Made by a program: the position numbers and the translations under genes. Source: Oculina patagonica (Eukaryota). Taken from it: a stretch of DNA of 64,000 bases. Numbering within the stretch: the first letter of the stretch is position 1; every line of letters starts with the position of its first letter. Location: assembly GCF_052425735.1 (NCBI RefSeq), contig NC_135758.1:19096001-19160000 (forward strand). The letters are read 5' to 3'. The notes below the pieces were generated by a model. The model had not been told where the DNA came from. It did no database searches and was given only the letters and a program-made list of their open reading frames with translations. Shown here one piece after another: positions 36,130-64,000 of this stretch.

Positions 36130-39100
36130 TCAAAATTCAAAATGTTCTTTATTTAATACCCCATGTGGGTCATATTCCTTTTTTAGGGTTTTCAGCCTTT
36201 GTAAATTGCTCCTTCCGAAGTAATTTTCCAAGCGTTGTTGACTGGTTGCTTCTACGCAGTCAGCGTAATTCTGATATGAGCCGAGCGAGTGAGCCAGCAA
36301 TGACTGACCAGCTGCTTCTGCCCACTGTCTGCATGCATGCGCAGTGCCATTAGCCTCGTCTTGAGGTTTCCACACGGCTTGCACACTGTACAGAAAAAGA
36401 GCATCTCTGTGTACGTAGGCGCAGGAATCACGTGACTTTCGGTTGATTTCTCCTCCCAGGAGCTCCAGACCTATAGTGTGAGGACCAGAACCAACTGGGG
36501 CCGATTCTAGCTGGGTTATTATGATTTGAATGACCTGAAATAGCCAAGAGAAACATGAAACGTTAACCTTCTCTGAATTAGATTTTCTGTCAGGTTTTGA
36601 GTGAATAAACAAAACGAAAACAAGGATCAAACTTGTTCTGCAACCAAAACCGTTTTGATTTCCCATTACAGTTACGTGAAAGGAAGGCTAGGCATGGCCG
36701 TAACCAGACCTTTACCATAGACGAGGCAAGACCTTGCTAGGAGGTTCTGGGGGCATGCCCTCCAAAAAGCTTTTGAAGTCTAGAAGCTCTGTAACTCTTT
36801 CGAGACATTTTTCATGAGGCATTTCATCTTGTTCACCTGGAGATTATTTTCCCAACAAAACATATTTTGTTTTTAATTTTGGGTAAAAATCTAGACGAGG
36901 CAAGAGCCTCATCTTGCCTTTTGCTAGTTATGGCCCTAGGCTAAGGATACGTCAATCATACTAAGTCAATATGTGGCCTCATCGGTCAATGAGACCGTCA
37001 GCTTAAAGGAACTGTGTCACGCATTACCGTACCTTCAAGTCCCCCATTCCTTCACTACAACTTGTCCTATAAAATTGTGAATTTCTAACATACTGTGCTC
37101 AGAGCGCTTAGAACAAGAAGGGAGAAAGTTTTACCTCGGGAGTTAATTCTCTAAGAAAAGCGGACTTCCACATCTTGCCCATTTTCTCAGGTTCCGCTCC
37201 AAATCTCTGTTGATATTCCAGGTAAGAAGTGGTCTGTTCTTGCCACGTGCCGTCGATAGCAGAGGAGCTCTCCCCTGGGGAACCGAACTTCTCCGTAAGA
37301 CTACGGAGAAAGGGAAGGAGTTTTCTCTCCGCGTCACACGGGGGTCCATCGTAGAAGTAGTCGACTGCAACCCCAGGGATTTGTGTAATAAGGTAAATAT
37401 TAAAGGTTACTTCATCTTCTGCTTCTCTGCAGAACTCGTTCATAACGTGCAAGAATTCTCCAAGCTTCGTTGCTGTCATCGGAAGATAGCAAAACCGGCC
37501 TGTTAAATGTAACACAAAATAACATTTTAACTTCCGATTAATTGTTAGTGTACTTTATGCATCAAGCTACTAGTTCGTTGTAATCACTTGCTCCAAGCTA
37601 GCGTGTGTTGCGCAATTTTGAAAGGCTAAGGATGTGTTACATATGTACTAAACCGATGTTTGGCCTCGTTTCAAGTAAACCAAAAGCTATCTATAAGGTA
37701 AAGTCTACAATTTGTTCACCAGAACTTGTCCTAAAGAAGTTGAGAAAACGCCCCTTTAGTCAACGTTTTCACTCTAATGGAGGAAGAGAGAAGACTCTGC
37801 GAACGACATAAGTATAAAATACTTTAACCAAGCAGACTCATTTTCAGTTGCGACTTATTTTTCCGGCATAAACAATACACAAGTTTATTATTTTTTTTTT
37901 GGTAAAAAATATATATAACAAAATTTAAACTTGTCCCGCTCTGCTTTGCCTCAATTTTAACTACACCGAAAGGCCTGGTTCAGCACAACATAATTTACAT
38001 AGCTGGTACATAGGCATAACGACATAAGGAAAAAAACGAATCCTTCCTTTACGTTTTTATATCTATGTTGTTAGTCTATTGATATGTCGCTATAGTGTGA
38101 ACCAGGCTTAAGACACCTCGTAATCAAAGTGAAAGTTAGACCTTGATAAACAACAGTAATGTACCTCCGACATATTTCTCTTGTAACTTGTGCAATTTGA
38201 CCTGTGCCTTGGTAACCACGCCATATCCCACCTGCCCAGCTCCCCTCAGTGCCCAATATAGCTGCTCGTGCTCTTGCGGTGATGCTACAATCCGCTGGCC
38301 AGTCGCTGTGACAATTTCCATTTGAAGACAGTTGTCGACTGCCAGCCCTTGTGTCCTGCTAAGAAACCCGAACCCTCCACCCAGCGTGAAACCGATAACA
38401 CCCACATCACTACAGGAACCATTCACCGCAGCGAGACCCAAGGGGCACGTGACGTCATCAAGATCCTTCACGGTCACTCCTGCCTCGATCCAGGCTGACG
38501 CTAATTCGACGTCTATGTCTATGCCTTTCATTGCCGACATATCAAGAACAAGACCTTCGCGAATAATAGCCAGCCCTGAATATTAAAAGAGTCTATAAGT
38601 TATTAATTCATTTATAAATTTAAGTATTTATCATTGACAACTGAACTCTCGAGCGGTCCAGGTTTCAGCCCTAGCCGGGGTCATTGTTTTGTATTTTTGG
38701 GAAAGACTCTTAGTCTTTACTCTCATTGTGCCTCTCTCCACCCAGGTGTGTAAAAAAATGGGTACCGGCGAATTTAATAACCCTGCGATGGACTAGAATC
38801 CCATCCAGGGGAGAGGGGAGTAGAATAGTCCTAAAATAGTCGTTTCCTGCTACTGAAACTGGGATAGGCTCCGGCCTGATGAGCCACTAGGATCGAATGC
38901 AGACTTAACCTTACCTTATCATTCATAACAACGTCTTTTATCAACGACACCGCAAACCCCACTAAGTAAGTTCCCATTGCCATGTTTTCTGACCAACTTG
39001 TGTCATGGGCATTGCACACTGCCTAATGCACAACTATTGGTTTAACTTGTTGGCGTTCAGGACACGGGGAAAGCCTGACTTATGACAAATGGTGCACGAA

Positions 39101-39466
39101 ACCAATCCAAATCCGTACTAACTAAAAACGCCGCGGGCGGCCGGGAAAGCGCGGAAAAAGTCGCGTTACTTACTTGGCGGGAAAACGGAAAAGTCACTGC
39201 GCATGCTGCTTACCTTTAGGGTCGTGCCCTCCACCAAGTACTGATACTCGGAGCTGATTGGCTGAGGCGTACTGCAGCACGTGACATACTTCGTCCGCAG
39301 TCTTGGGTTTGATGACTGCTTTAGGTTTGTTGGAAGGACTTCCATTGAACAATCTTTTCACAGATTTTTTATACTCTTTCTGTCCCTCTACAAAAGCAAG
39401 CAGGTTCGATTTTTCGCACAGGGTCTTGATGACTGGGTCACGTGTGCTTTCTTCAGGACTGCTCAT
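36130..39466 (-). CDS. FAD-linked oxidase, VAO/berberine-bridge-enzyme-like (FAD_binding_4 + BBE), complement(join(36130..36534,37135..37499,38165..38575,39214..39466)), ~477 aa
   Basis: PKAVIKPKTADEV, VLGGGHD (candidate covalent-FAD His), GLVLDMSAM, VGVIGFTLGGGFG, LYWALRGAG..YGVVT, BBE tail YQNY...YFG.NLQRLKTLKKEYDPHGVL. All junctions are GT-AG and in frame. Confidence 0.88.
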
Positions 39467-40614
39467 GATTCAGTTGAAAAGAATGTTCTGCAAAGGAAAA
39501 CACCAATGAACTTATCTTTAAAAAGTCTAGCTTATCTTTAATACATTATAAAATCATGTTATAACGATTTAACAGTGCCTAATGTTTTGATTTCTTGGTT
39601 TAATAACTTAAATATGAAAAGCAAACAGCCTTGCTACAGTAAAAGTTTTAAAAATGGAGTGTTTTGGCAAAATTTTTTAGGTTTTATTATGATTATTTTA
39701 CGACTGCCGTCGATATGGACGTGGTCCGTGACGTAGAAATAATATTTTACATTTTTCATTATGAAACATTTGTATCTGGTATCCCAGGAGTATGAAAAAG
39801 AAGTCAGATAGCGAATACTTCCATCTCCGGCGGTGGTTCCCAGAACAGCATTGTACGCTGTGTTCCAGTTGATGACGTGTTTCATTGCCTGCCCAACCAG
39901 AGCATAGGGTAGTTGTAAGCTCAGCCAATCAGTAGCTATTATTTAGTTGCAGAACCTAACCGCCAACCATTCAACTTTTTCCCCCGCTTTTCGATGTAAC
40001 TTTTATTTACCACGAATATTTAAGATAAAAGGACACTTTTATCCCAGTCTTTGTTTAAGTGAGGCATAACTGAAAACAGTTAAAACTGGGACGAAAAAAA
40101 TTAATGGGAAACAAAATAACGCTCCGACAGCAGGCTTGAGTAAATGCCTTTAAACTGTAATTTTCATGTGGAAGAAAATTTGCGACGACAGCCGTTAACA
40201 GCGGGGGTCGGCAGGGGGTTCAAAACCTGTTTCAAAGAAAGCACAATATTCACATGACTAGACGATCGATCCTTCAATTTGATATGTCGTGTTGTAAATA
40301 ATTAAAAGCAGGACCGCATCTGTATTGGCAAAGAGTCTTTGAATTTTTTTATGACCCTCCATCAATATTAATTCTCCCAGAAATTTTAGTGCACACGGGA
40401 GTTTCAGAACTTTCAGTGTTCTAAAGAGTAAAATTTTTAATAGAACAAGAATCTGGGTGTTTGATTGAATTATTTATTATTCTAAGAAAAAAAGGAAATT
40501 TCCCTTTTTATTACAGACATGCAAATTGTGTTTTGACATTGTTCTTCCGAAAATGAATCTCCAATGAGGTTTTGTCCAGTCACCATGATGCTGGCTGACA
40601 TGTCGCTTGTGACG

Positions 40615-43484
40615 TTAAGAGTCAATATCACCAAAGGAATTAACATTTACTCCTGTGTAAGTGTTGGTCGGCGGCATCTGCTTACCAGGCTTCATCGGCT
40701 CAGCCAAATAGAACGCAGCTGGTAAGGCCCGCATCTCGGCAGCACAGGACAGCGGAACTGAAAATAAACAATATAGAGATATGTATACTTAACAATTATT
40801 CTATAAGCCCGCGTTGGATACGAGGTGGTAAATAGCCAACGAGGCGCGAAGCGCCGAGTTGGCTATAACGACTCGTATCCAACAAGGGCGAATAGAATAA
40901 TTGTTTTATTAAATTCTTCTTTAAGTTTAAATCGACTGGACATTTCATTTTGATGTAAACGAAGTGATAGTATGAGGAGGCGGGAAAATTTGTGGTGCGG
41001 TGTTCACTTTTTGAGTTGAATGAAACACGAGAGGAAAGCGAGCGAAGCCGGAGTTTTCTTCCCAAGATTTTTATCTAACAATCTTCTCTAAAGTCTTCTT
41101 TATATCTTGGAAATTGTGACAACAGTTAAGATTTACGGGATGATCCGAAGCAAAAGCGTTTCTGGAAACTACACTTCTTGTGCAAGTCGAACGAAGCAAG
41201 TGTTTACATTGTACGGCTGTCATCAAGACTGCTATATTATTTGAAGCGAAATTGAACTCAAAGCGGAACAGATTTATTGAAGTTTAAAAGGACAAGACCA
41301 AGATTGAAAGGTAATAAACTTTACAGAAGTGCTGAGCCTAATTTTAAGACGAACACTAAAAGGAACTGTCATTTTGCCGTTATTTCGTAAATTATTTTCT
41401 GCTTTTCTACTTTATTCACTCGCTCTTGTTGTTCGTTTACAAGTTTATTAATTAAATTTTTCTCATCAATCCTTTTGTTTTGCGTAATTAAATTTTACTA
41501 TGGCATTTCTGTGGTTTTTGTAGGCACCGCTGATTTTTTCTTGTTCACAAAGCTCGCCAAATTTGCTGTTTTCAACCATTTTTTCTGATGGAAGTGTCGC
41601 TTCCCGCAGAAAAATTTTACGCTGAGCGGCACTTGCCGCACTCATTTCCCATATAAGGTCAAACATAGGTATACGAGCTGGTAACCGGGATTCAGTGAAC
41701 CAATCAGAAAGCTAGAAATGCAATATCCGAGGTTGAGAATTTAATATAGCTATTATTAAATTTTCAGCCACGGATATTGCATTTCTAGCATTCTGATTGG
41801 TTCACTCAATCCCGGTTGTCAGCTCGTATACCTTAGTTTGACCTTATTTGGAAAATGATTGCGTTACTGTTGCCAAACTAAAATTTTTCTGCGGGAAGCG
41901 ACAGTTCCATCAAAATGGTTTTGAACAGCAAATTTGGCGAGCTTTATGAACAAGAAATAATTAGCGGTGCCTACAAAAACCAAAGAAATGCCATAGTAAA
42001 TTAAACTACGCAAAACAAAAGGATAGATGCGAAAAGTGTAATTAATAATACTTTTAAACTGAACGCACAGCAAGAGCGAGTGAATAAAGTATAAAAGCAG
42101 CAAATAATTTACGAAAGAACGGCAAACTGACACAGTTTCATTCAGTGTACGTCATAAAACTAGGCTCAGCACTTCAGTAAAGTTTGTTACCTTTCAATCT
42201 TGGTTTTGTCCTTTCATACTTTAGTAAACCTGTTCCACTTTGAGCTCAATTTCGCTTCAAATAATATAGCAGTCTTGATGACAGCCGTGGAGCCGTAAAG
42301 AAGTACAAATTAAACACTTGCCTCGTTCGACTTGCACAAGACTTGTAGTTTCCAGAAAAGGTTTTGCTTCGGATCTTCTCGTAAATAATAATAATAATAA
42401 TTTGCTAATTTATATAGCGCATATTTTCATGTTCTGATCAATCAAATCTTAACTGTTGTCACAATTTCCATGATATTTAGACGACTTTAGAGGGGATTGT
42501 TTGAGGAAAATCTTCTGAAGAAAACTCTCTTGCTCGCTTTCCTCGTATGTTTCATTCAACTCAAGAAGTGAACACCGCGCCAGAAATTTTCGCGCCTCCT
42601 CATACTATCACTTCGTTTACATCAAAATGAAATGTCCATTCGATTTTCAAGTTCAGTGAACTTGAGAAGAATTTAATAAAACAATTATTCCATTCGCCCT
42701 TGTTGGATACGAGTCGTTATAGCCAACTCGGCGCTTCGCGCCTCGTTGGCTATTTACCACCTCGTATCCAACGCGGACTCATGGAATAATTGTTAAATAG
42801 AGAGAGCTGGATTGACTGGTTCGACTAGCTATAACAGCCAAACCAAATTGTCCATGAAATAGCCAAATCGCTCTCGAGCAAAACGTAGCTTGAACCATAG
42901 TTAGTAGTAACTATTGCTTGAACCGAACCATAAACTCGCGCACATGAACAAACAATAAATTTTCAGTTCAGTACGAGAAATTAGACAGTTATAGCAGCCA
43001 TAGCTAAAGGCGAGAGAGCTTGGTCAAGGACTCGGTCGTTTCTTTTCCAAATGCTATTTTACATATCGAAATCGCTATAAATCTCCCAGCGGGAGAGTCT
43101 GCTTACTCAAGTATGTTTTGGAGAATCTGCTCACCGAAGCATCTTTTAGAAAACTTGCTTACTGAAACTGACTGAAAGGGGGACATATTAAATCCAATAA
43201 AACATTGGCAAAAAATATAACGTATTGCAGAGGTTTCTCTGTTCGTGAGTTTCAGAGCTCACTCCTGTAAACAAAATAGCTATTTCAAAAGTTCAACGAA
43301 TTGGCACGTTTAGTTCTAGGAAGGCACATCGTTGTTTTGGATTGATCGTGCATAAGATCTCTCCAAAATACTGCATTCAGTGTGCTGTGTTAAAGAATTC
43401 AGAGGACATAATGAGTTTTCTGATACCTGAAGGTTTCTCCTTTGGACCATCGCGTTTCTCAGGGACAGACTTGATAGCTTCCAT
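40615..43484 (-). CDS. Putative graspetide-like precursor A, complement(join(40615..40757,43427..43484)): MEAIKSVPEKRDGPKEKPSVPLSCAAEMRALPAAFYLAEPMKPGKQMPPTNTYTGVNVNSFGDIDS (66 aa)
   Basis: 58-nt ATG exon, phase-1 GT-AG intron, terminal exon. Same structure in four paralogs. Not in the ORF track. Confidence 0.8.
40790..42796. repeat. ~2-kb imperfect palindrome (two ~1-kb inverted copies of a repeat) inserted in the precursor A intron
   Basis: Arms match from TTAACAATTATT..CGCGTTGGATACGAGGTGGTAAATAGCC to a centre near 41750. The flanks are contiguous in paralog D (~62095-62130). Confidence 0.85.
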
Positions 43485-43784
43485 CTACCAAACAAAATGC
43501 CCTCGTTAATTTGCATTAACGCAGTATTTTCACCTAAATAACGACGGAAAACATACAACAGAAGTAACATTGGCAATAAAACTGGCAAAAATAGATTACG
43601 TACCTCGCTGGATGCAGACAATTTCGCAGTCGCGGCGTGTAGTGAAATTACTTCGATCTTCCTCTTACGAAGTTTCAAAAGATTTTGTAGCGGTATGGCC
43701 TCTTTCAGAATATTTAACTGGAAAGTGTTGACGCATGCATTAACGGGACTGTTTCTTAGTAACTGACGGATTTTAGGGCCGGGC

Positions 43785-45243: not shown

Positions 45244-46661
45244 ATGGCTAACACAATTCTGTGTATTGGCAGCGCGGAAGACCCGCATATTCAAGAGGTC
45301 GATAAACATGTGAAAGCAATAGACAGCAAGGCAAGAGTTGTGCTATTCAACCCTCTTTGTGGAAGCCATTTCATCGAAATCACCGCCGGAAATCTCTCAG
45401 AGCAAGGTCCTAGCTGTACTATTGTTGTGGATGACGAACGCATCAGTGCCGAATCGATCAGGTCTGTGTGGTATCGCTGGAAACCGGCCGTTCTTTCAGC
45501 AAATGAAGATCTCCAAGGTCTCATTGCCAAAGACTTCGCCTTAAAGGAGTGGAAATCGGTGATTCGTTCACTCGCGTCGTATCTGCCTCACGCGAGGTGG
45601 TTGAACCCGCTGGGGGCCTCGGAGCTGATAAACTGTAAACCGCATCAACTGAAGCTCGCGCAACAAGTTGGGCTGACTGTGCCACAGACCACCATCACAA
45701 ACAACCCAACAGCCGTGGAAAAAATCTTCCAGCAAGTGGATCACGGACGAGTGATATTCAAAAGCCTAACGCCTCTATTTGTGCCGCCAGATAAACTGCT
45801 ATACACAACAGAGATCACAAAAGAATTTCCATCCGTGTCCCGGGCAAGTGTAACACAGTGTCCAGCTATCTACCAGGAGCTGGTGGAAAGGAAATCAGAT
45901 TTGCGTATCACCGTCGTTGGTCGAGCAGTGTTTGTTGCCTGCATTGCTTCGCAGATACTTGATGAGAAGAAAGATCGCTTGGATTGGAGACGATGCCAGG
46001 AAAAGGACGAGATGTACAGTATAGCACAGGTATAATCATCTTATCACGGTTATAACACAGCATGTAGCTTTTAGGGACGGACCATTGAATTTTGAAAGGG
46101 GGGGGATTGGGCAATTACGAAAAAATTCTCGAACAAGGAAAGTAGGAGTAAAAAATCATGCAGAAGTAAGCACGGATTACAATTCAACCAAGTCCCTCTT
46201 TGTTAACATAGAGTTGGTAAAAGACTGAAATTCTTGCAAATATCAATGATCAAAAAAATCTTACTCCGGAGAAATTGGGCAACAACTCTACCCCAAAAAT
46301 CAAATGGTCCGTCCTTTACGGAGCTTTTAGGATCTATTGTTCCGTTGCTTATAGATGTTTAGCTGTTCGATTCCCCAGTCCCCACGAATTTGACTTCCTC
46401 GCATTTATTTCTTTCATTTTTTAACAGGTAACTGAGTCATTTAAAGAGCGCTTGCTAGAGTTCCACGAGAAAGCAGGCTTGGTTTTTGGCGCTTACGACT
46501 TCTTAGAGCGCGGTGATGACGTCATATTCCTCGAATGTAATCCCGGAGGAGCCTGGCTCTGGTTAGAAAACAGTCTTGGTCTTAAAGTGTGCGAACACGT
46601 TGCGCGATACCTTCTGGGTAAAGATGAAGCAAACTCTTCCAGAGCCACAAGCAGTGAATAA
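45244..46661 (+). CDS. ATP-grasp peptide ligase, RimK-superfamily MvdC/MvdD (graspetide synthetase)-like, join(45244..46029,46428..46661), ~339 aa
   Basis: Motifs [91 protein letters not shown]. Phase-0 intron CAG|gtataa...aacag|GTA joins ORFs 45244 and 46452 in frame. Confidence 0.9.
46073..46316. mobile_element. MITE in the ATP-grasp intron
   Basis: TIR AGGGACGGACCATT / AATGGTCCGTCCTT. Same family as 25044-25278. Confidence 0.7.
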
Positions 46662-47255
46662 ATGAATGAACTTAAGAGATCCAAATTTAAGACTGACATT
46701 ATTAGTTTCGGTTGTATAAAATAAACGAAAACAATTTATACGCGGGACTTCTGGTATGTAGACCACACTGTTATGACCCACATTTGAACATTTGACGTTC
46801 TTTATCTTTTTGTGAAATTTTGATTAAATCATTGTGATGTAGAGGTTTTATTTGAAACCGGTTTAAATGTGCGGAATAGTTTTAAGTAGCAAGACCTTGC
46901 TATCCCATCTCTGTAGAAGAACAACATGTTGCCAAAAGCAAAAGACAAAATAATAAAAAAACAGAAGATAGAGAAAAATGTTTGCAACTTAATTGCAACC
47001 TGTAGTATGTAGTTAAGTTACAGATCTTAATCGGTTAAACCTGAATAAACCTGTTTTTGCCGGCAGCTTTTGGTGAGTCAAAATGTGATTGGGCACGAAT
47101 TCTCGTCTGATGCAATCCCACAGTGATCTCTTTGTGAAAATGAACCAGAGATGAGTTTATACTTGTTGCACATGTGACACACATTTTTATTGGTTTATAA
47201 ACCTTTAACTGAACAGTAAGTGAGCGTTGGAGCGATTTTCCGTTCGCGAGTTCGC

Positions 47256-48335
47256 TTAAGCATCAACTTCTGAACAATGGGGTCCTTCTTCTGTACATCC
47301 GATCACTCCTGGAACAGTCATGGGCTCCACCAATGAGAAGGCAGCAGGGTATGTACGCACCTCGGCTGCGCATGTCATCGGCACTAAACAAATATCACAG
47401 CATGAGTAAATTATGACTGAACCCAATATCATATGCAGTGGATGGCTGCAATATTTAAATCAACTTTTCACCTTTTTAGTAACGGTGAACTAAAATTAAA
47501 AAAACTCACTGAAATGCAGTTAAAAGGGTTTAGGACAGTCAAAAACAACAAAAACAACTGATGACTCAAATTGCACACTTTTTCAAACAAACAAATGCCA
47601 TTGTTACAAGTTTAGCCGCGTCTTTGCATTCTTTGAGGAAAAAGTCCACAATGAGCCATAATCTAACTCTATAACTCCTGTTATTCCCTTGTTCACCTGT
47701 ACACCAGAAGAGAGCCAAAATGACTTGAATTGGTGTTCATTGTCATTTTTATTCGCTGTCTATACTGGCCGTAAAAAACCTTACAAATCCTTACATTTGT
47801 TGGCAAGATTTCCGCACAGGACCCTACATTAGTTATGCATACAATTTTCTGACTGATTCGTTCTTTTCATGATTGCTGTTTATGCATAGTGATAGTATGA
47901 AATAGTTGCATACATAATTAATGTAGGGTCCTGTGCGGAAATCTTTCCCATTTGTTCATTGTGGGCTTGGGGAACCTGTGCTTACATCAAGCGAAGCGAA
48001 ATAAACACTCGAAGTGGGAATATAATTTGTGACGTGATGCTGCAGTATGTAGAGTTTAAAACTAGAAAATAAACAACTATTAAACGAACATGTAACACAT
48101 ATGAATTGATCCATGTTTTATGTATAACTACGATGAATATTACCTTTGGTATTTTCTTTTGGATGTTTCTTCGTCTGAAGCGCTTTCTCTGCATTTTGGA
48201 GTACAATCTGCGAGAAGGAACACACCAGTGCGTAATGAACTCCACAGAAACAGCAATCCGTTAACTAAGCAAAAGTAACCTCGACAAAAATACAACAAAG
48301 CAAAAGTATTCACCTACCTCGCCTGAGGCAGACAT
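47256..48335 (-). CDS. Divergent putative precursor F, complement(join(47256..47383,48144..48207,48318..48335)): MSASGEIVLQNAEKALQTKKHPKENTKVPMTCAAEVRTYPAAFSLVEPMTVPGVIGCTEEGPHCSEVDA (69 aa)
   Basis: The terminal exon aligns with the other leaders (VPMTCAAEVRTYPAAFSLVEP vs VPLSCAAEMRALPAAFSLAEP) with the same phase-1 intron. The upstream exons splice in frame. Confidence 0.7.
47810..47941. repeat. Short inverted-repeat element in the precursor F intron
   Basis: TTCCGCACAGGACCCTACATTA / TAATGTAGGGTCCTGTGCGGAA. Confidence 0.7.
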
Positions 48336-50136
48336 TTTCGCAGTTGCAGCAAAACTTAACTCAGTTGCGGACACCAACAGAATATTTACTAAATGGTTCA
48401 TTAACTTTGGGTGAGTTCAGATATTTCATGCAAATGATATTACATGGTATTGTGACCAATCACATGCGAGCTATTGTTGTTGTGTCCGTCCTTGTTCTTT
48501 TCCATTTGAGTACCCCAAGAGACAGAGTTTATGGAGCAAAAAAGTTCAACAAACAAAATTGGAAAAAAAAATTGGAATTTTGATAGTATCAGTACAAAAC
48601 GCGCGAAATTAAAGTGAATCGTGATCAATAAATATTATATGTAAATTCAGTTTAAATTCAGTGTAACAACGTTGTCGGTATCTTTAGAATTTTCTTTTAA
48701 TTACGAGTGTTTGGCTTCGCATCGGAAAAAGTAATTGCATTCTTCTTGCGTTTGGAGTGACCAATTACATTCTAACTTATCAATAACACGTTAGTCTACT
48801 TTGTACGGGTTGTTTATTCAATACAGTGATCTTCAGTATCGTATTTCAGTAAGGTTTTCTAAAATATTTCGACTGCTAGAACTTTTTTTGTTATTTCAAA
48901 ATATGCCTTTTTCGAAGCGAAGCCATAACAAACTTTATTAAGTTTCTTTTAATTTCGTTTGATTTGAAAAGAATGTACATTGACATTTACAAAAGTAATT
49001 GTTATTTTATCTTGAGTATTGTAGAGTTGTACAATACGATTTGGAATTTATTTGCACAGCAGGTATTGCTGGTGACACCTTTGGTTTGGCCCGAAACTCG
49101 TAAACAACTTAGTATTAATATGTGGATGTGGGCGGAATAATGTTAAGCTAGGGTACAGTCTGTGTCCGAGCCAAGTGGCCCATACAGCCGGAGCTTATCC
49201 CGGTTTCTGTAGCATTAAGCGACTAGGAGTATTGCTATTCCCCCCTGGATGAGATGCTAGTCCATCGCATCGTCTCTTTAAAAATGCGCGTGCAAGATTT
49301 TAATAGCATTCAGAGAAGAGTTGTAATACCAGTGCTTTAATTTAGTAAACTTGTAGCTGAGGAGTAAACATATAAAAAAGAAAGCTGATTCCGTTGTTGC
49401 AGTGGGACTGCTTATCCCCGCTACAAACTGATCGACTGACAATAAACATCTCCTAGGATAATGGAAAACAATGACTGGTTTTCTCACAAAATAAGTCTTG
49501 AGGAACATGCGAAAAGTTTGTGGAAATGACTTCTTAACGGTCTTCTTTTCGGAAAAAAGCACTGGGGACTTGATTCCACCTAATGAAAGCTAGCGAAGTC
49601 CACCTCTTATAAAAGGGCCTTTTTTAAACACTGTTTTAAGGTGGCTCGATCGCGGGTTTTTGAGTGACGATGCCTTTCAACTTTGAGAAACATGTATGCC
49701 ACCGTAAACAAAACAACTGAAAATCGATAAATACAGCTGTACTAAGAAAGATGAAAGCTTCAAATGAGGTACGTTTAATTGAAATCGGAGTTACCATAGC
49801 AACATTATAACGTCACCACCCATTTTTACAATAGACCGATTTTCTTGCTATACAGGGAAACTTTTGTAAAAGGTCTATCTTGATCTTTGACTGGAGATGG
49901 TTTTTTCGAGGTTTGCAAAATTAGAAGAATTTCTATACGAGCGTTTTTAAAAAAATTTCGAATGAAGTTTTGAGCCACCTTTACTAGCTTTTTAAGCCGA
50001 ACAATTGATTGTTAAAGAGATAAATAGTCATTCGGGTTTACGCTTTAACAGTTTTATTTCATCGATTATAACGCCATTACATCTCATGGAATCACGATTA
50101 ATCAAGTTGATGCTGGCAAACATCTCGCTGGTCAAG

Positions 50137-51293
50137 TTAAGCGTCCCAATCACTGTAGGAATTGAGATTCATCCCCATGGTGTAAGAGGCTGTTGGCATT
50201 TGATTGCCGGGGTCCTTTATCGGCTCAGCCAATGAGAAGGCAGCTGGTAAGGCCCGCATCTCGGCAGCACAGGACAGCGGAACTGAAAATAAACAATGCG
50301 AAAAATACGTGGATAAGAACATCCAATTTCCATATATGGGGAGATTAAGGGCTGGATCGAATGACCTTTATAACAGAAAAAAACCAAACTGGCCAGCCAA
50401 AGCAAAACGCAAAAATACAATGTAAACGCTTAAACAGAAATATAAATTTTTAGGTACGTGGAAAAGACAGCTTAAATGCTAAAGGCGAGAGCTTGATCAA
50501 GGAAACTTTTTGTTGACAAATGCTATTTTACATATCCAAATCACTACTAACAATCTTCTAGCTCTTAGCGACATAAACTGTTTTCAAAAGGATCTTTTCA
50601 GAGAAAGCCAAAGTTGAAACAGCGACGTTTCTAAAATGAAGGATCATATGCGTGACTCAATTGCACTCTTTTAATTCTATAAGAATTTATTTTACAAGAA
50701 TATCGAGGCTGAAATTTGCGAAATTTAAAGAACATTTTAAGAATAAACCCGAGGCTAAGATTTTGAAAAGAATATAATTTTGTGTGTTGAAAATTTGTAA
50801 GAGAATATAAATATATATGTTTTTTCTAATACCTATAGAATTCGTCCTTTTTCAAAACGGCAAAACTAGACAAATGCTGATGCTATTGACAGCTCGATGA
50901 ACGATACATGTATAACATATGTATGGCATACAGCACAAGCAAAAAATGTTATACGCTATAATCTAAGAATATTCACAAGAATATTCAGCTTGGGTCGGGA
51001 GAAACAATATTCTTATACAAAAAGAGTGTAGTTTTTTTTAACTCACAATTGAAAACACAATATAGCTAATTTTTCAAAGAATTGGCATGTTCACTTTTAG
51101 GAGACTTGTTGTTCTTATAAAACATTTTATCTTCAGGGACTATTCTGGTTTAATCGTGCTAGAAATCTCTCCAAAGTGCTGCATTAAGTTTGCTGTGTTA
51201 GAAAATTAGAACAAAATAATGAGTTTTTTTGATACCTGAAGGTTTTTCTTTTGGACCATCGCGTTTCTCAGGGACAGACTTGATAGCTTCCAT
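50137..51293 (-). CDS. Putative precursor B, complement(join(50137..50282,51236..51293)): MEAIKSVPEKRDGPKEKPSVPLSCAAEMRALPAAFSLAEPIKDPGNQMPTASYTMGMNLNSYSDWDA (67 aa)
   Basis: Same two-coding-exon structure as A. Canonical splice sites. Upstream non-coding exon donor at ~51390. Confidence 0.82.
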
Positions 51294-51516
51294 CTACCAA
51301 ACGAAATGCTCTCGTTAATTTGCATTAATCCAGCATTTTTACCTAAATAACGGCGGAAAACATACAAAACAGAGATAAAGCCTCACTTACCTCGATTTTA
51401 CTTGATTTTTTCCTTCGGAGACTTCGGGGGTACAAGTATCCTTTTCATCTCGCCAGAATATTACACACCCAAATTGTTGAAAGCGTTATAGTTATCTCAT
51501 TAAGTCGTGGGAATCT

Positions 51517-51550
51517 CTGATTGGCCGAAAGTTGTCCTCGTGACAGGAAA
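51517..51550 (-). promoter_or_regulatory. Conserved CCAAT + GTCACGAG composite upstream of precursor genes (also 57031-57063 and 63066-63098)
   Basis: CTGATTGG and CTCGTGACAGGAA occur at an identical 20-bp offset in B, C and D, although the spacer sequence has diverged. Confidence 0.55.
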
Positions 51551-52722
51551 CTTGTAATTAATATCATATATATTGTTGTTGTTGTGATTTTATCTAGATA
51601 TGTTTTCAAAGTCGCCACAAATCCTTGATTTTTTGATACATTGCGCTTGCGTGTTACAGTGTTGACAATTTTCGCTGTGACTGCAACGCATCATCATCAT
51701 GATCATCATCATCGCTATTATATAACGGTCATTGAACATCCAATTCAACGAAAGGAGTTTTATTATTCCACTATTGGGCCATTTTACCATATTTGGGTAA
51801 AAGAACGCGCAACATATGCCACGTTATTACACTGCAGGGCAAAAATACGGACGGACAAACTTACCCAATACGGACCCAAACTTAGTGGAAAAAATAGTGG
51901 AATAATTAATCCCTTATTTAAAGGGACATTTTGTTAATTTGTCAAATTTAAAAATACGAATTCATTGCTCGTCTAATAAAATACTACGCAACTCGCAAAA
52001 TATCCGCGCGTATTCTATGTTAAACCATTGAATAAGCTGTATGAATTATTGATTAAATTACACGTCACGGGGGTAGTTCCAGCATTGATGCGGGTTAGTT
52101 CCAGCATGAATATTCAGAGAGCAATAAAACACTCAGAAATCTTTGCAAATACTGACAACAGAAAACATTAAGCAGTATATATACGAGGGGAAAACAGCGG
52201 CCCCATTATTTTCGCTTTTCGGAATTTTCTTCGAAGAATAGGATGCAAGAATAGTCATTATCAAAAAACCCTCTTGGGCATCGAAATTTCTTACAAATTA
52301 CCTCATTTGTTATTTCAGCCTTGTTGATGTTGTTGTTAGTATAAGTTTTCGAGGCTCCTTCTTGTTGTCAGAGTTATGCAAACTGAAGGAGTTGCTTTTT
52401 GTTGCTCACTGGAGATGATTTGCAATTGATATTTCTACCGACACTTAGATTCTGATATTCAACTGAGAAGTAAATTCCAAACACAGATAACACTTAAACA
52501 CAAATGTCGCATGTTACCCGTGCCTTTCATACAAAGCCGGATCTCATTTTACTTAGAAAAAAGGGAAAATATTAATTCTATATTATTCAACTCGTGACAT
52601 TTGATTGGCAGGCGACTTAGTGGTAAGATAATTTACAGTTTCGAACAAGAAGTGTAAATTTTATTTGTGGTGTCTTGATTCAAAGCAATTATTCACAGTT
52701 TCTGCGCGAAAACGTTGCCGCA

Positions 52723-52888
52723 ATGATCTCAGTGGTTTCGTCTTGAATTTGCCTGCTAGCCCTGTGTATTTTAATAGTCATCTTCGTTTTATTTTACACA
52801 AAAATATGGAAAATGCTAATCCGCTGGCCGCTCAACAGATGAATTGATCTTTTCTACCACCGAATAATAAGCGATAAAGGTCGACCCG
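52723..52888 (+). pseudogene. Pseudogenised exon 1 of the beta-hydroxylase paralog
   Basis: 166-nt copy of 58951..59116 with two in-frame TGA codons (TCT TGA; AGA TGA). The intron is interrupted by a TE and no exon 2 is seen downstream. Confidence 0.85.
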
Positions 52889-52949
52889 GTAAGTTTTAAT
52901 GTTCGTTTTATTTTGTGGATATTTTGTGAGCGGCAGTCGGAGTCTTTAA

Positions 52950-56809: not shown

Positions 56810-58950
56810 CTACCAAACAAAAATAATGCTCTCGTTAATATGCATAAACGAAGTATTTTTAAACCTAAATACCTGCGGAAAGCATACAAAACACAGCGAA
56901 CAGAGACAAAGCCTAACTTACCTTGTTTTTACTTGGTTTTTACTTCGGAGACTTCAGGGGTAAAAGTATTCCTTTTCACCTCGGTATTTCTCGTCAGAAT
57001 ATAAACACACCCACAGTTGTTCGTGGTTATCTGATTGGTCGATTTTTTCCCTCGTGACAGGAACTTGTAATTAATATCATATTTGTTCTTTGGGATTTTA
57101 CCCAGATATGCGGTTTTCATTTTCGCCTCAACTCCTCGTTTATTTGATACAATGCGCCTGTGTGTTACAGTGTTGACAATTTTCTCTGTGACTGCAACGC
57201 ATCATCGCTATAAAAACCCCGACCACTAAACATGCTAAACAGCCAGTAAAACGAAATGTGTCTAATTATTGATCAGATTACACGTGGTCGTTCCAGCATC
57301 GATACAGGTTTCGTTCCAGCCTGAATACTTTTAAAAACAACAAGAACTGCAAGCAGTTTATAATCGTGCGGGTAATGTTTGACCACCTGACCTCTTTCAG
57401 TGCTTTGGCTTAAAGGCATGGCGCCGCACAGTAAAATCATTAGAAAAGCAGTCACTTGAGAAACACACAAGTCGTGTTTGCGTTAGTCACGGAGTGAACG
57501 TGACATGAATTTCCTTTACCACATCATCTTTTGCTTTTTAAAACCACATGCCTAGCCGGAAAAATGCCTGCTTACGCATGCAAATATTTATTTTGTTCCG
57601 AATGTTCAATAAAATAAACCCAAACCAGTTCATTTAAAAGAAAGCCAAATCACGTCAAAATAAAGAGTAGACTAAGGCCATCCCATTGTGTTTCTCCGTT
57701 GAGCGTCTTTCGACAAGCTTTTGGTAATTCCCCTGGCGCGATGACGTGTATCCCGTGCTTTGACACATTCTTGCTGAGCTTGCAACTTACGTTTCGATTC
57801 TCAAAATACCGTAAACTCGATCAAAACAAAAATTGGGATATCCAGAAAATAAGTCGTCGTTTTGCAATATTTACACGTTCCGGGTAAATTGTACGACTTG
57901 TACTCGCTCCGAGCCAAACGCTTGAGTAACACAACAATAAATATTTCACACAAACAGAGCGCAGAGTATTCAAACAGAAAATAGGTGAATGATTATTTAT
58001 AGCTACAAGTGAGAGATCGCGTGACATGGGTCTGACGTAGTGGTAGTTTTAAATAGCTTGGACATGTCCAAGCGGTCTTTGTTTTCGCTATGTGATTATA
58101 TTCAACCCTCTCTTCTTGTAAAATATGGAATGGAACAAAATTATACATTTCAGAGAGCAGAGTGTTCATGTTAAACGCGAGTGATCGGCTGATTGCTATT
58201 AAATATTATATCTTGCGTGACTGTTACAGAAGAGCCGGCTGGGCCGCGTGGGTCTGGATCGATTTACCGACAAAACAAAAAAATCTGACACAGATTATGA
58301 ATCGGGACCAGGCCCCGCCCGATTAACAATAAAACACTCAGACATCGGACATTCTTGGAAATGACCTGCCACAACAAAAACATTAAGCAGTATACGAGGA
58401 AAAAACAGCACCCCATTATTTTTGCTTTCCTGACTTTTCTTCGAAGAAAAGGATGCAGAATAAGTATAAGATTTGATAATTATACTGGTATAATTGAGTG
58501 AGATAGTCATAATAGCTCGGGCATCTAAATTTCTTATAAATTACCTCAATTGTTATTTCAGCCTTGTTGATGTTGTTGCTAGGTAAAGTACCCGAGGCTC
58601 TGCTTGTTCAAACTGAACGGATTGCACCTTGTTAGTCACTGGAGATGATTTGTAATTTTTCTTTTCACCAAACACTCGGACTCTGATATTCTACTGAGAT
58701 AATTCCAAAGATAACACTCGTACACAGATCGAGATGTCACGTGTTACTTGCGTGACTTCCATAGAAAACCGGAAAACATTGTTCTCAGAAAAAGGGAAAT
58801 TTTCTATTCAATATAATTCAACTCGTGACGTGTGATTGGCATGCTTCTTAGTGAGTCAGATGATAATTTTCAGTTTCGATCTAGAATTGCAAAGCTTGTG
58901 AGTTATCTTGATTCAAAGCTGCACAGTTTTCAAGCGAAAGCGTGGACGCA

Positions 58951-59886
58951 ATGGTCTCACTGGTTTCATCATTCTTTTGCTTGTTAGCCCTGTGTATTTT
59001 ACTAGTCGTCGTCGTTTTATTTTACACAAAAACATGGAAAATGCTAATCAGCTGGCCGCTAAACAGATTAATTGATCTTTTCTACCACCGAATAACAAGC
59101 GATAAAGATCGACCCGGTAAGTTTTAATGTTCGTTTTATTTTGTGGACATTTTGTAGTCGGCAGTCGGAGTTTTAAAAAAGCGTTGCTAGTTACTTCGCT
59201 TATCATAATTTCCTTTTTACTACTGACTACTGGGAAATAGAGCCTTCATTTCGCTGATGAGCGTGGCTTATTTTTGTTAATTATTTTCAGCGGTGTTCCA
59301 GAACCATGTTCAATTGTTTCCATGGCTGAGCCAGCTGGAAGCTAACTGGGAAGCGATTCGAGATGAGTTGTTGTCCTTCGTTGAAAAAGGCACCGGACTG
59401 TGCAACGTCCATACTACAGGCGGAGGTGAGCTTAACAAAGAAAGCAAATGGAAGCTGGCGATGGTTTTTGGTTATGGCAAACCCATAGACGAAGTGAAAA
59501 GCTCGTTTCCCTTGACTCTGTCGATTTTGACAAAGCTTCCCGAAGTTCAAAACGCTGCATTCTCGCTTCTTAAAGCAGGTGGGTCCATTCCCCCGCATGT
59601 TGGCTCGACCGCGTCTATTCTCCGCTACCACCTGGCGCTAATTGTCCCGGATAATGGCAAGCACTCGTGGCTTACAGTGGCTGGCGTCAACATACCGTGG
59701 GGAGAGGGGAAAGGGATCTTGTTCGACGATACGTTTGAGCATTCTGCTCGAAATGGCGCAGAAAAAGATCGTGTTGTGTTGATTGTGGACATTTTCAGAC
59801 CCAATCTTGGACTAGTTGATGGATTGATTCAGAAAATGGAAGTGTGGAAACGTACGCAAGATTTTATTGCTGGCAGGCAAGGATAA
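58951..59886 (+). CDS. Aspartyl/asparaginyl beta-hydroxylase-domain 2OG-Fe(II) dioxygenase with N-terminal membrane anchor, join(58951..59116,59291..59886), ~253 aa
   Basis: FPWL..LEANWEAIRDEL, AAFSLLKAGGSIPPHVG, LRYHLAL, WGEGKGILFDDTFEHSARN, DRVVLIVDIFRP. Phase-1 intron CCC G|gtaag...ttcag|CG. Exon 1 is hydrophobic. Confidence 0.88.
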
Positions 59887-59939
59887 AGGACATGGTTGAA
59901 TTTTTCTGATCCGTCTACCCAGTGTTTTAAAGTTTTCTC

Positions 59940-60362
59940 CCGGGGGGGGGGGGGGTACTCCATATAACGGCCTATACGGGGAGGCTCCGCCCGAAAGGGG
60001 TACCTTTTTCAGGCTTCAGGTATATAAAAGGGTAGCGATTTCACAAGTTTAGGTATATGAAAGGGTATGAAAATCCGTCATTTAGGTTTTTTAAAAGGCC
60101 TGTAATTAAAATATTTCGAACAGGCCCACTTTATGGCTGTATTATTTTAATTTATTAAGCGCTTCAAAAAAATGACAAGAAAATGTCCTGTTCTAAGGCT
60201 ATGTCACGTCTTTTAGGTATATGAAAGGGGTACTTTTTTTCAATAAAAGGTATACGAAAGGGGTACAATTTCTGTCAAAATGGTATATAAAAGGGTAAGG
60301 GGTAAGAGCTTGGGGCGGAGCCTCCCCGTATAAAACTTTTTTGAGTGCCCCCCCCCCCCCGG
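59940..60362. mobile_element. MITE-like repeat, same family as 9010-9423
   Basis: Reverse-complement match including TACGGGGAGGCTCCGCCCGAAAGGGGTACCTTTTTCAGGCTTCAGG. Confidence 0.75.
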
Positions 60363-60899
60363 AGTTTTCTTTGCTTGTATTAAGTCAGTTGGGAAAATAA
60401 ACCATGTAAACGGAGAATATGCGTTCAGTTTTCAATCATTGATAGTTCTCAAGTTCGTAATGCATGAAGCTGTCTCGTTATATTGTTTCGTAAGAAGAGA
60501 ACTGATTGTTCAGATAAAGGAACTCTCGAAGACTATTCTCCGCTATCTGACTGACTTTGCTCTAGGTTTTTGTTTGAATTTATTTTTCTGTTTCTGTGTT
60601 AAATTTTAGGTTGAGGTGACGTAGCATAGTGCTCAGTTTTCTTTAATCACGTCTAGTAAGTAGTTCCTGTACCGAACTATCGCATTGTCATTTTTGGGGC
60701 GAGAGGGGTCATATAAAAAAATAGGATTTACAAAGGGGGGCAAGATAAAAATATCTGATGACGAAGGAGGGCAAATGCATTTTTCAGGCACCGTCGATCA
60801 AATTCCACCCCCATCCCATACAAAATAAACGGTCACTTTATTTAGGCAATAGGGAATAATGATAATCATATCTCCGCGCAACCATGTATTATCCTCTAT

Positions 60900-61520
60900 T
60901 TAGAAATTAAGGAGTACACGGCAGTTACAGAGCTTTCAATGTTCTAAAGAGCAAAATATTTAATAAAATAAAAATCCAGGTGTATAATTGAATTATTTAT
61001 AAACGATTCTAAGAAAAAAGGGAAGTTCCCTTTATTACAGTATCACATAAAACAGACACGCAAATGCGTGTCTTGACATTGATCTACCGAAAATTAATCT
61101 CCAATGATATTTTTGAATTTGTCTCAATCGTTTACTTTCATTTTCCACGGAAAAGAATATAAATAACTTACTTTTCCAATGATGAAACCAAACTAACCAG
61201 GGCCAATTTTATAATTATCCACCAGAAATTTAGGTGAACACGGCAGTTGCAGAGCTTTTGACGTTCTAAAGAGCAAAATATTTTATGGAACAAAGATCCG
61301 GGTGTAGGATTGAATTATTCATAAACGATTCTGAGAAAAAAGGGGACTTTCCTTTTTTTATCACAGACATGCAAATTCGTGTATTGATATTGATCTACCG
61401 AAAATTAATCTCCAATGTTGTTTTTGGATTTTTCTTAATCGTTCACTTTCATTTTCGACTGAAAAAATATTAATAACTAACTTGTCAATAAAAAAACCAA
61501 ACTAACCAGGGCCAATTTTA
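60900..61520. repeat. ~320-bp tandem duplication; also homologous to ~40380-40570 downstream of precursor A
   Basis: Units CACGGCAGTT.CAGAGCTTT..GTTCTAAAGAGCAAAATATT...AACCAAACTAACCAGGGCCAATTTTA repeated twice. Confidence 0.75.
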
Positions 61521-61893
61521 AAAAACCTTAAAAAGTCTAAACTAAATATATGGGTTACATTCCTCGAAAAAAGGTGAAAAAGTCATAAGATTATTTTCCG
61601 GGAGTTAATGGAGGGGATTTTTCTTTTTTAAACGGTCTGGCTTATGTTTGAAAATAATTTTTTTCTAAAAGAAGTTTAGGTATACCAAATGCCGCCCGAA
61701 ATGTTTCATTGTGGCTATTGCGACTAATCATGAAACTAAACGCGTGCAATTTTGCGGGCAACGAGAGGTGAAGAGACATTCACGTTTATGATTTAACTAT
61801 TTTATTGCATGGATTATAATGTCATTTCAGTACAGCTAACTCTTTTCAGTATCTCCAGTCACTATGATGCTAAGAGACATGTGGCTGGTGAAG

Positions 61894-62842
61894 TTATGCG
61901 TCCCGATCACCGAAGGAGTTGGCATGACATATATCTGTGTAAGTGTTCGTCGGAGGCATCTGTTTACCAAAGTCGATCGGCTCAGCCAAATAGAAGGCAG
62001 CTGGTAAGGCCCGCATCTCGGCAGCCAAATAGAAGGCAGCTGGTAAGGCCCGCATCTCGGCAGCACAGGACAGCGGAACTGCAAACAAACAATATAGAGA
62101 TATGTATACTGGCTAAATAGAAAGCTGGAATGAATGGTGCGACTAGTTATAACAGCCAAACGCTTCCCCAAAGAAGAATGGAACTTGAACCGACCCATAA
62201 ACACGCGCACATGAAGTCAGAACAAACAATAAACACGGGCCTTACGTGCACCCATGCACGAAGAGGAGTAAGTAAGTAAGTACATCAACAAATAATAAAG
62301 GCAGTTAGCAACTAAAGGTGACTTTATTTTTTCTTTACCAAATGCTATTTTACATATCTAAATCGCTATAACTGCTATAAATCTTGCAGCGAAAAAATCT
62401 GCTTACATGAGTATCTTTTGGAGAATCTGCTTACTGAAGCATCTTTTAGAAAACTTGATCACTGAAAATTCTCTTTGAGAATACCTAAACTGAACTGAAA
62501 GCCTTTAAGGGGAACATTAATACGACGAAACAGCGTCGTAAAATGTAAGATAAAATAGGTTTCTCTGTTCGTGAGTTTCAGAGCTCACTCCTGTAAACAA
62601 AATATCTAATTCGATTTCAAGGAATTGGCAGGTTTAGTTCTGGGAAAGGATGTCGTTGTTTTCATGAAATATGTTAAATTTTAGGCACTATTTTGGTTTG
62701 ATCGTGCAAAAGATCTCCCAAGAACACTGCAATGAATTTTCTGTGTTAAAGAATTCGAACAAAATAATGAGTTTTTTTTTATACCTGAAGGTTTTTCCTT
62801 TGGACCATCGCGTTTCTCAGGGACAGACTTGATAGCTTCCAT
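61894..62842 (-). CDS. Putative precursor D, complement(join(61894..62078,62785..62842)): MEAIKSVPEKRDGPKEKPSVPLSCAAEMRALPAAFYLAAEMRALPAAFYLAEPIDFGKQMPPTNTYTDICHANSFGDRDA (80 aa)
   Basis: Same structure as the other copies, with an in-frame 39-bp tandem duplication in the leader. Confidence 0.8.
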
Positions 62843-63893
62843 CTACGAAACAAAACGCGCCCGTTAAACAGATTAAGCATCTGCTATAAACGCAACATTT
62901 TTACTCTCACAACGACTAAAAAGAGATAAAACCTTCCCTTACCTTGCTCTTGGTCGATTTTTTCTTCGAAGACTTCTAAGCTTTTCGTTCAATTGTTTAC
63001 CGTGAAATTTCTCGTCAGTGCACGCCACCACCTCGGACTGCGTGATATCATCAAGTCGAAGGGCTCTGATTGGTCACAGTTTTACCTCGTGACAGGAACT
63101 TATCACAAACGTCACTATTGTTTCCCCTAATTGGGTTTTTACCCTAACCTGTTTTCGTTTTCGCCGCAAACCCTGAGTCATTGAATGCGCCCGCGCGTTA
63201 CATTGTTGACAATTTTCTCTGTGACATCGCTATTTTTAGACCGACCACTTCAGACCCATGCAGGCTACCATTAAATATGTTGAATTATTGTTTACAGCAT
63301 CAAAACAAGTTCGTTCCAGCCTGAATACTGAGAGAACAATAAAACACTCAGACATTCTTGGAAATACTTGCACAACAAAGAAACAAACAACTTTTGACTT
63401 TTATTAGAAATTAAGGATGCAGTGAAGGTCTAAGAGCCCATAATAAAAAGGTTGTGTGATGTGACCGATATATGAGTAAACTGATTGGTTATCTAAATTT
63501 TTCATAAATAACTGTACTATAAAATAAATATATGGCTTAAATTCCCAGAAAAAAAGCGAAAAAATGCTAAGATATTTTCTCCGGGTGCTTATGGTGGGGA
63601 GATTTTCGTTTTTGAATGGTCGGGCTTATATTTGGAAGGAATGTTTTCTAAAAGATGTTGAGGTGTAACAAATGTGGCGCGGAATACTTAAGTGTGGCTA
63701 TTGCGACTGATCATGAAACCAAACGCGCGCAATTTTGCAGGCTACGAGAGATGAAGAGACATTCACGTTTGCGATTAATATTTAACAATTTTATTTTATG
63801 GATTATCATGTCACGTCATTACAGTACAGCTATTTTTTTCAGTGTGCCCAGTCACAGTGAACAGCGATGCTGGCAGATATATCGCTGGTGAAG

Positions 63894-64000
63894 TTAATAG
63901 TCCCAATCACTGTAGGAAGTGGCATGCTTCCCAAAGGTGTAAGAGGCTGTTGGCATCTGATTACCAGGGTCCTTGATCGACTCAGCCAATGAGAAGGCAG
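63894..64000 (-). CDS. Putative precursor E, partial terminal exon: ...AFSLAESIKDPGNQMPTASYTFGKHATSYSDWDY*
   Basis: Open frame nearly identical to precursor C, truncated by the window edge. Confidence 0.78.
   Translation of the reverse strand, partial: AFSLAESIKDPGNQMPTASYTFGKHATSYSDWDY

Follow-up and report, generated by a model that had tools for sequence, protein, structure and literature searches.

The window analysed here is a 64,000-nucleotide (nt) stretch of Oculina patagonica NC_135758.1, and coordinates are positions in this window unless they are marked as window-equivalent or given on C1, the contig to which the window belongs. It carries a candidate locus for graspetides (peptides made by the ribosome and modified after translation, RiPPs, with omega-ester or omega-amide bonds): a single ATP-grasp ligase gene is surrounded by small spliced minus-strand genes for putative precursor peptides, of which five are complete and one is truncated where the window stops. 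A first-pass annotation had described such a ligase amid at least six small spliced peptide genes. Each of these elements was recovered at or near its reported position, and the ligase-precursor locus is confirmed.

Gene structure and transcription of the locus

The ligase and precursor genes were delimited as follows:

45244-46029 and 46428-46661, plus strand: graspetide-type ATP-grasp ligase, 339 amino acids (aa), from GT..AG splice sites and family and structure matches
43484-43427 and 40757-40615, minus strand: precursor c40, 66 aa, core end ...NSFGDIDS, annotated as hypothetical protein P0100
48335-48318, 48207-48144 and 47383-47256, minus strand: divergent precursor c47, 69 aa, from intron-skipping contigs
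51293-51236 and 50282-50137, minus strand: precursor c50, 67 aa, with an exon joint in RNA-type contigs
56809-56752 and 55297-55152, minus strand: precursor c55, 67 aa, splice sites from sequence and from homology to c50
62842-62785 and 62078-61894, minus strand: precursor c62, 80 aa, from repeat analysis and translation
about 63894-64000, minus strand: precursor c64, last exon cut by the window end, from homology search

The open reading frame (ORF) of ligase exon 1 encodes 263 aa (45244-46035) and ends just beyond the GT donor at 46030; exon 2 opens after the AG acceptor at 46427 and stays in frame to the stop at 46661. The precursors came to light through repeat analysis and alignment, as a minus-strand exon that recurs behind a TTTTCAG acceptor. 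The c50 product is identical to the annotated O. patagonica hypothetical protein P0090, and an upstream non-coding exon of this gene probably ends near 51407. For c64, the remainder of the last exon lies at window-equivalent 64001-64043 and the leader exon at 65699-65755. In the 529-Mb genome, a search matched the ligase once and the last exon of the precursors eight times, all within C1:19136621-19170486 (a 34-kb array); two of the eight precursor copies fall a little past the window, near window-equivalent 68.3 kb and 74.3 kb.

The spliced translations contained the conserved leader that had been described earlier for peptides of 66-80 aa. The N-terminus is hydrophilic (MEAIKSVPEKRDGPKEKPS in four window copies) and is followed by a central segment, VPLSCAAEMRALPAAFSLAEP, with a near-invariant ALPAAFSLAEP motif, and then by the C-terminal core. 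No hydrophobic signal sequence was found in any precursor copy; in this the precursors match the ligase, for which no signal peptide was found either. The main core type is QMPTASYT[FM]G....SYSDWD plus one residue, and its layout, with Thr/Ser donors ahead of a terminal S-D-W-D, was seen in the window and in orthologues (PTASYT[FM]G....S[YF]SDWD.). Most core copies have just two acidic residues. The c40 and c62 cores end in ...NSFGD.D., the c47 core contains Cys and ends in ...CSEVDA, and the c55 core holds a Lys (...TFGKHATSYSDWDW). Mean pairwise identity among the five complete main-type copies (c40 left out) was highest in the recognition segment (0.96), followed by the N-terminus (0.84) and the core (0.80). 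The idea of a small library of variable cores held in part: c40, c62 and c47 do carry variant cores, but the main core is strongly conserved between species.

The c62 leader contains a 39-nt tandem duplication (61983-62071, 13 residues) that doubles the recognition motif AEMRALPAAFYLA, which makes c62 a natural 'two-leader' precursor.

For transcript evidence, contigs from three RNA-type runs of three studies (X1, X2 and X6) and from one DNA-type run (X15) were compared with the window. The two c47 introns (47384-48143 and 48208-48317) are skipped in contigs of X1, X2 and X6, and contigs of three RNA-type runs, each from a different study, likewise skip the c50 intron (50283-51235; joint 50282^51236). 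All of these introns have GT..AG ends on the minus strand, and no skipping of them was found in X15. Two precursor genes, c47 and c50, are therefore transcribed and spliced. At the ligase, contigs of X2 and X6 begin to fit the window at 46424, near the predicted acceptor at 46428, and extend 224 and 691 letters upstream of that point; the DNA-type run reads through the ligase intron. The boundary is consistent with a spliced ligase mRNA, exon 1 lying outside the compared stretch. The 3' end of c47 faces that of the ligase near 47060: RNA-type contigs for the plus-strand ligase and for the minus-strand c47 stop within about 10 bases of one another, at 47055-47065, and the 3' ends of these convergent transcripts touch or overlap slightly.

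Family identity of the ligase and its predicted contact with the leader

In a Pfam scan, ligase exon 1 gave only a weak match to the MvdD-type pre-ATP-grasp domain (PF21068, E 2e-4). NCBIfam models were more informative: the full-length orthologue of Acropora millepora (P0011) matched MvdC (TIGR04185, 7e-50), TIGR04187 (SAV_5884, 'ATP-grasp ribosomal peptide maturase', 1e-48) and MvdD (TIGR04184, 3e-44), compared with 3.5e-7 for RimK (30 bits, as against 170 bits for MvdC). Exon 1 of the window ligase gave 6e-33 (MvdC), 1e-29 (TIGR04187) and 1e-27 (MvdD), and no RimK match in NCBIfam.

Structure comparisons and the complex model described below were carried out with P0005, an orthologue that is 90% identical to the window ligase. 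Its significant sequence matches among solved structures were solely to the graspetide cyclases MdnB, AMdnB, MdnC, PruB, CdnC and PsnB (5ig8 at 1e-35, followed by 7m4s, 5ig9, 9bou, 7mgv and 7drm). An AlphaFold2 model of P0005 (predicted local distance difference test, pLDDT, 81; predicted template modelling score, pTM, 0.82) was searched with Foldseek: ranks 1-32 were occupied by MdnB, AMdnB, MdnC, PruB, CdnC and PsnB enzymes, and RimK appeared from rank 33. Identity of the ligase to the solved graspetide enzymes is about 25-27% over the fold matches. By NCBIfam, solved structures and Foldseek alike, the ligase groups with graspetide synthetases and not with RimK or glutathione synthetase. DWRR and a second, 10-residue motif are kept in the ligase and both align with MdnB; as in ATP-grasp enzymes generally, they are presumed to be catalytic and Mg/ATP-binding motifs.

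Microviridin ligases bind a helical PFFARFL leader on a hairpin of the central domain, with MdnC residues 182-195 involved (PMC7823629). A complex of P0005 with the 47-residue peptide of the c50 last exon was modelled in three runs. The median interaction prediction score from aligned errors (ipSAE) was 0.62 (runs 0.00, 0.63 and 0.62), compared with 0.00 for the best control; in calibration, 51 of 78 solved complexes and 2 of 108 mismatched pairs attained the ipSAE mark. The runs shared at least 15% of their contacts and the partner pLDDT was at least 30. The modelled contacts join peptide residues M8 and A10-I21, which correspond to the ALPAAFSLAEPI motif, with ligase residues 174-210, and this ligase segment corresponds to about residues 171-212 of MdnB in a HMMER alignment. 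As a prediction, the model supports leader-guided recognition of the precursor by the ligase.

For the ring chemistry, the comparison was again with microviridin, in which esters join Thr38 to Asp44 and Ser43 to Glu46 and an amide joins Lys40 to Glu47; in graspetides the nucleophiles always stand ahead of the acids (PMC7823629). The S-D-W-D of the coral core falls in the same register as S43-D44-W45-E46 of microviridin (PMC7823629). By this analogy, the most likely pattern would be one ring from Ser to Asp at i+3 and another from the upstream Thr to the first Asp.

Conservation, origin and candidate tailoring enzymes

The first-pass annotation had proposed a synteny check in other cnidarians, and the arrangement is kept in other corals and in a sea anemone. 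Ligase orthologues occur in many corals and anemones, and linkage of ligase and precursor was also found in three further species: Porites lutea, another coral (L004) and the anemone Actinostola. The Actinostola order is a three-exon ligase, a convergent precursor and then a hydroxylase (80% identical), and this precursor's last exon shares 78-79% identity with the corresponding exons of c50 and c55. Upstream, two additional exons resemble those of precursors (L003:8863-8967 and 7175-7231), with a diverged leader (...EVLRTFPAAFSLVE...) and unrelated cores, so the anemone too has a small precursor family. The L004 genes run from an ARM-repeat gene through BBE oxidase, ligase and hydroxylase to a precursor. 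Porites lutea has two precursors upstream of the ligase, with the same leader and different cores, and on another coral contig (the P0004 locus) the gene list places a PF05118 gene 5.5 kb downstream of the ligase. In spliced full-length precursors of other species, the recognition segment and the core are almost unchanged and the N-termini differ. Since tandem duplicates are not independent placements, the argument from clustering rests more on this conservation across species than on the number of copies in the array.

In the ligase tree, 16 cnidarian ligases and one anemone-like sequence form a single clade (SH-aLRT, Shimodaira-Hasegawa-like approximate likelihood ratio test, 99). Two database neighbours of this clade were checked, and both sit in compact loci of bacterial style, where a small ORF adjoins the start of the ligase; beside one of them, for which the DNA was examined, the small ORF has a Thr/Asp-rich tail. 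Bacterial relatives of the ligase (61 sequences, at most 35% identity) came from Proteobacteria, Acidobacteriota, Nitrospira, Actinomycetota, cyanobacteria and others, and several of them have tandem upstream precursors with Thr/Asp-rich C-termini. Intron number differs among the ligases: Oculina and L004 have one, Porites lutea and Actinostola have two, the extra intron lying near residue 92, and the Actinia paralogue has none. This variation fits a gradual gain of introns after a single transfer.

The Actinia-type paralogues (P0066, P0068 and P0101; L001:10001-11023 in Actinia tenebrosa) form an intronless sister group in which FLDCD replaces the FLECN Mg-binding motif and DWRR is lost, and which may therefore have changed function (neofunctionalised or inactive). 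No recognisable precursor was found within 10 kb of the A. tenebrosa gene by tblastn and a leader-motif scan, in a locus that has an assembly gap. A ligase paralogue of A. muricata is known as a 1.3-kb transcript contig only.

Two oxidative enzymes had been reported beside the ligase, a 2-oxoglutarate (2OG)-Fe(II) beta-hydroxylase and a BBE-like FAD oxidase, and domain matches bear out both identifications. The corresponding features were:

58951-59116 and 59291-59886, plus strand: 2OG-Fe(II) Asp/Asn beta-hydroxylase, 253 aa, PF05118 (E 5e-37)
52694-52949, plus strand: relic of the hydroxylase first exon and its upstream region, 88% identical over 256 nt, frame broken
39466-39194, 38540-38136, 37515-37108 and 36666-36130, minus strand: BBE-like FAD-linked oxidase, at least four coding pieces with approximate splice sites, PF01565 and PF08031

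Hydroxylase exon 1 encodes an N-terminal membrane anchor and exon 2 the catalytic domain. Over its entire length, the spliced model aligns with P0246, a full-length homologue (85% identity), and with homologues of 246-255 aa on short Logan and JGI contigs. Lys/Arg residues follow the hydrophobic anchor, which, by the positive-inside rule, suggests that the catalytic domain is cytosolic. The closest matches outside cnidarians are bacterial (36-37% identity). The relic at 52694-52949 implies that precursor and hydroxylase were duplicated as one tandem unit; no second hydroxylase catalytic exon was found in the window by tblastn. Elsewhere in the genome, a PF05118-like match was obtained just once, to a distant paralogue on another contig (36% identity, G000:C3:24876651-24877049).

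The recurrence of the linkage in an anemone and in other corals argues for a function shared by hydroxylase and ligase, and this synteny makes the hydroxylase a candidate tailoring enzyme; a bacterial precedent is SmaO, which carries out Asp beta-hydroxylation within a graspetide cluster (PMC12186529). The BBE oxidase, whose apparent N-terminus has no signal peptide, keeps its place and orientation beside the ligase in one other coral only (L004), and its involvement is possible. Nearest-cluster taxa, taken as leads only, were bacterial for the hydroxylase and mixed bacterial and fungal for the BBE piece.

Co-transfer of the hydroxylase or the BBE oxidase with the ligase was considered and is unsupported: none of the 61 bacterial ligase loci has a homologue of either within 6 kb.

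The locus lies on a 49-Mb contig with animal genes on both sides; its neighbours are CoA-transferase, chondroitin synthase and ARM-repeat genes. On the upstream side, these comprise one CoA-transferase gene of family III, one gene for chondroitin N-acetylgalactosaminyltransferase and one ARM-repeat gene. GC (guanine plus cytosine) content is even along the window at about 0.35-0.44, and about 0.41 at the locus, as in its surroundings. A Harbinger/PIF-type transposon was noted within an intron of the CoA-transferase gene (5114-8522). Contig depth is extreme at 49100-49300 and 50500-50900 in all runs (in DNA-type run X15, up to about 220,000); both stretches are repeats of very high copy number that lie between precursor genes. 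The upstream features were:

1580-2134, 4069-4374 and 9743-10186, minus strand: exons of the CoA-transferase family III host gene, from sequence
5114-6190, plus strand: transposon ORF with SWIM and YqaJ exonuclease domains
6526-7674, minus strand: DDE_Tnp_4 transposase of the transposon, from a domain match
8151-8522, minus strand: THAP-like ORF of the transposon

Interpretation and comparison with known systems

We consider it likely that the locus is an animal-encoded graspetide (omega-ester/omega-amide RiPP) locus of a stony coral. The intronised animal RiPP pathway proposed at first pass was supported by computation: of the conditions named there as refuting it, those open to computational testing came out in its favour. 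As read from the tree, one bacterial graspetide synthetase gene would have entered a hexacoral ancestor and gained introns later. Its presumed substrates would be cytosolic precursors in which a near-invariant recognition segment (PLSCAAEMRALPAAFSLAEP) lies between an N-terminus that varies and a C-terminal core. The ligase would hold the recognition helix on the hairpin of its central domain, in the way that MdnC binds PFFARFL of MdnA and as the complex model suggests, and would use ATP to activate two C-terminal Asp side chains, which would then close onto upstream Ser/Thr hydroxyls. The likeliest rings would be those named above, Ser to Asp from i to i+3 inside S-D-W-D and upstream Thr to first Asp, and Lys-containing variants may add an amide. 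The membrane-anchored Asp/Asn beta-hydroxylase would probably modify Asp/Asn in the core, and the BBE-like oxidase may also act.

Several observations weigh against this reading. Every NCBIfam score of the ligase is far under the curated cut-off (e.g. 170 as against 425 bits), which makes it a divergent relative of these families, and no second ligase gene was found in the whole-genome search (microviridin clusters have two). The coral leader motif is ALPAAFSLAEP and not PFFARFL, and the coral core has no TxKxPSD and shares only the S-D-W-[D/E] end and the upstream Thr with microviridin. One of the three complex runs scored 0.00, the fold of the peptide itself is uncertain, the complex was built with P0005 rather than with the window's own spliced ligase, and its pass could partly be memory, because a solved MdnC-MdnA complex (5ig9) exists. 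The RNA-type label is a tool guess, the RNA nature of these runs being taken from the intron-skipping contigs, and the ester and amide rings are predicted here from genes. No leader protease or exporter was visible in the cluster; and the count of 0 of 61 bacterial loci with a hydroxylase or BBE homologue means that the role of these enzymes cannot be inferred from a donor cluster.

Some of these points would also suit a ligase and peptides that cooperate in a chemistry other than macrocyclisation: RimK-like C-terminal Asp tailing, another single linkage, or regulation of the ligase by the peptides. RimK-type enzymes have the same fold, the ligase falls under the cut-offs of all graspetide models, most cores carry just two acids, and the altered Mg-binding and DWRR motifs of the Actinia paralogues show that the family can drift. 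We nevertheless hold this alternative to be unlikely, given that the E-values of graspetide models are better than that of RimK by over 40 orders of magnitude, that an MvdD-type pre-ATP-grasp domain is present, that the placing of donors ahead of acceptors and the register of S-D-W-D are as in microviridin (PMC7823629), and that the predicted contact is the leader site of MdnC. Somewhat less probable again is an accidental co-location, in which the peptides are independent cytosolic proteins or unconventionally secreted signals and the ligase has another substrate. Conserved microsynteny without function does occur in animal genomes, and the tandem copies count as non-independent placements; against this, the linkage is kept between Scleractinia and Actiniaria though other neighbours differ, no precursor copy lies elsewhere in the 529 Mb, the complex model selects exactly the invariant motif, and the closest prokaryote-type relatives keep precursors adjacent.

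The nearest non-cnidarian relatives of the ligase and the hydroxylase are bacterial or sit in bacterial-type loci, as they would if a bacterial cluster had contaminated, or been mis-assembled into, the coral scaffold. This explanation was effectively refuted and is left with a negligible probability: c47 and c50 have spliceosomal introns (intron-skipping contigs), GC content at about 0.41 equals that of the surroundings, animal genes stand on both sides on a 49-Mb contig, and the same arrangement occurs in independent assemblies of other species.

Among known systems, close parallels to the graspetide locus proposed here are the group 1 microviridin/marinostatin clusters (MdnA with MdnB/MdnC or MvdC/MvdD). 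The best structure and fold matches of the coral ligase are MdnB, AMdnB and MdnC, and it shares the MvdD-type pre-ATP-grasp domain. The coral leader motif, like PFFARFL, starts with Pro, is conserved and is predicted to sit on the central-domain hairpin (PMC7823629), and the core places Thr/Ser before the acids and has S-D-W-D where microviridin has S-D-W-E. The differences go beyond the motifs, since the coral genes are nuclear, intron-bearing and separate transcription units; there is one ligase instead of the two that divide ester and amide formation between them; the large ring, as proposed, would take in about 11 residues instead of 7; most coral cores have two acids and no Lys; and neither an acetyltransferase nor an ABC transporter lies near the coral locus. 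By its sequence, the coral precursor appears microviridin-like in its working but outside the subfamily by motif.

The plesiocin/thuringinin-like multi-precursor clusters (TIGR04187) are similar in another respect: they have one ligase, several tandem precursors, a shared leader and Thr/Asp-rich C-termini, and the coral ligase orthologue scores nearly as well with their model as with MvdC. One ligase with several tandem precursors was seen directly in the bacterial relatives L019 and L026. The bacterial precursors lie directly upstream in an operon, whereas those of the coral are spread over 34 kb on the opposite strand, and bacterial cores end in ...ETTDD-type repeats. The pairing of ATP-grasp ligase and 2OG oxygenase has a parallel in the Sma (SmaO, PMC12186529) and corallotide (CorB/CorC, PMC13097080) systems, where the oxygenase tailors the ligase's peptide. 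SmaO hydroxylates two Asp spaced D-x-D (PMC12186529), and the D-W-D of the coral core has equal spacing. The coral hydroxylase differs from both in being a membrane-anchored PF05118 protein; CorC belongs to PF13640 and hydroxylates Lys (PMC13097080).

The mycosporine-like amino acid pathway of cnidarians provides a parallel for a bacterial-type enzyme fixed and clustered in anthozoan genomes (PMC3640398, PMC9298759), but it uses another ATP-grasp family and acts on a small molecule, not on a ribosomal peptide. Identity of the coral ligase with the mycosporine-pathway ATP-grasp enzyme was rejected: the ligase matches peptide-maturase models only.

Graspetides are bacterial products throughout the literature that was searched, and a large phylogenomic survey (PMC8939145) mentions none in eukaryotes. 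The first-pass annotation knew of no described metazoan graspetide pathway; a full-text search, with most subscription journals outside it, found no description of one in cnidarians or other animals. On balance we lean towards the broader proposal that hexacorals make their own graspetides. The synthetase would have been captured before the coral-anemone split and the precursors and hydroxylase recruited to it, giving a conserved bicyclic peptide (...TASYTFG....SYSDWD.) and lineage-specific variants.

If this is true, an animal genome would here encode a graspetide pathway for the first time, and a RiPP class of bacteria would come to include animals, with reef-building corals and anemones among its producers. 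It would also add another marine invertebrate that makes a 'microbial-looking' product itself, rather than through its microbes. The product may be an endogenous protease inhibitor or signalling molecule, and the locus is a small candidate source of new protease inhibitors or signalling peptides in ecologically valuable organisms. For evolution, the locus would indicate that a single transferred enzyme can found an animal gene cluster, through intron gain, birth and death of precursors and recruitment of tailoring enzymes.

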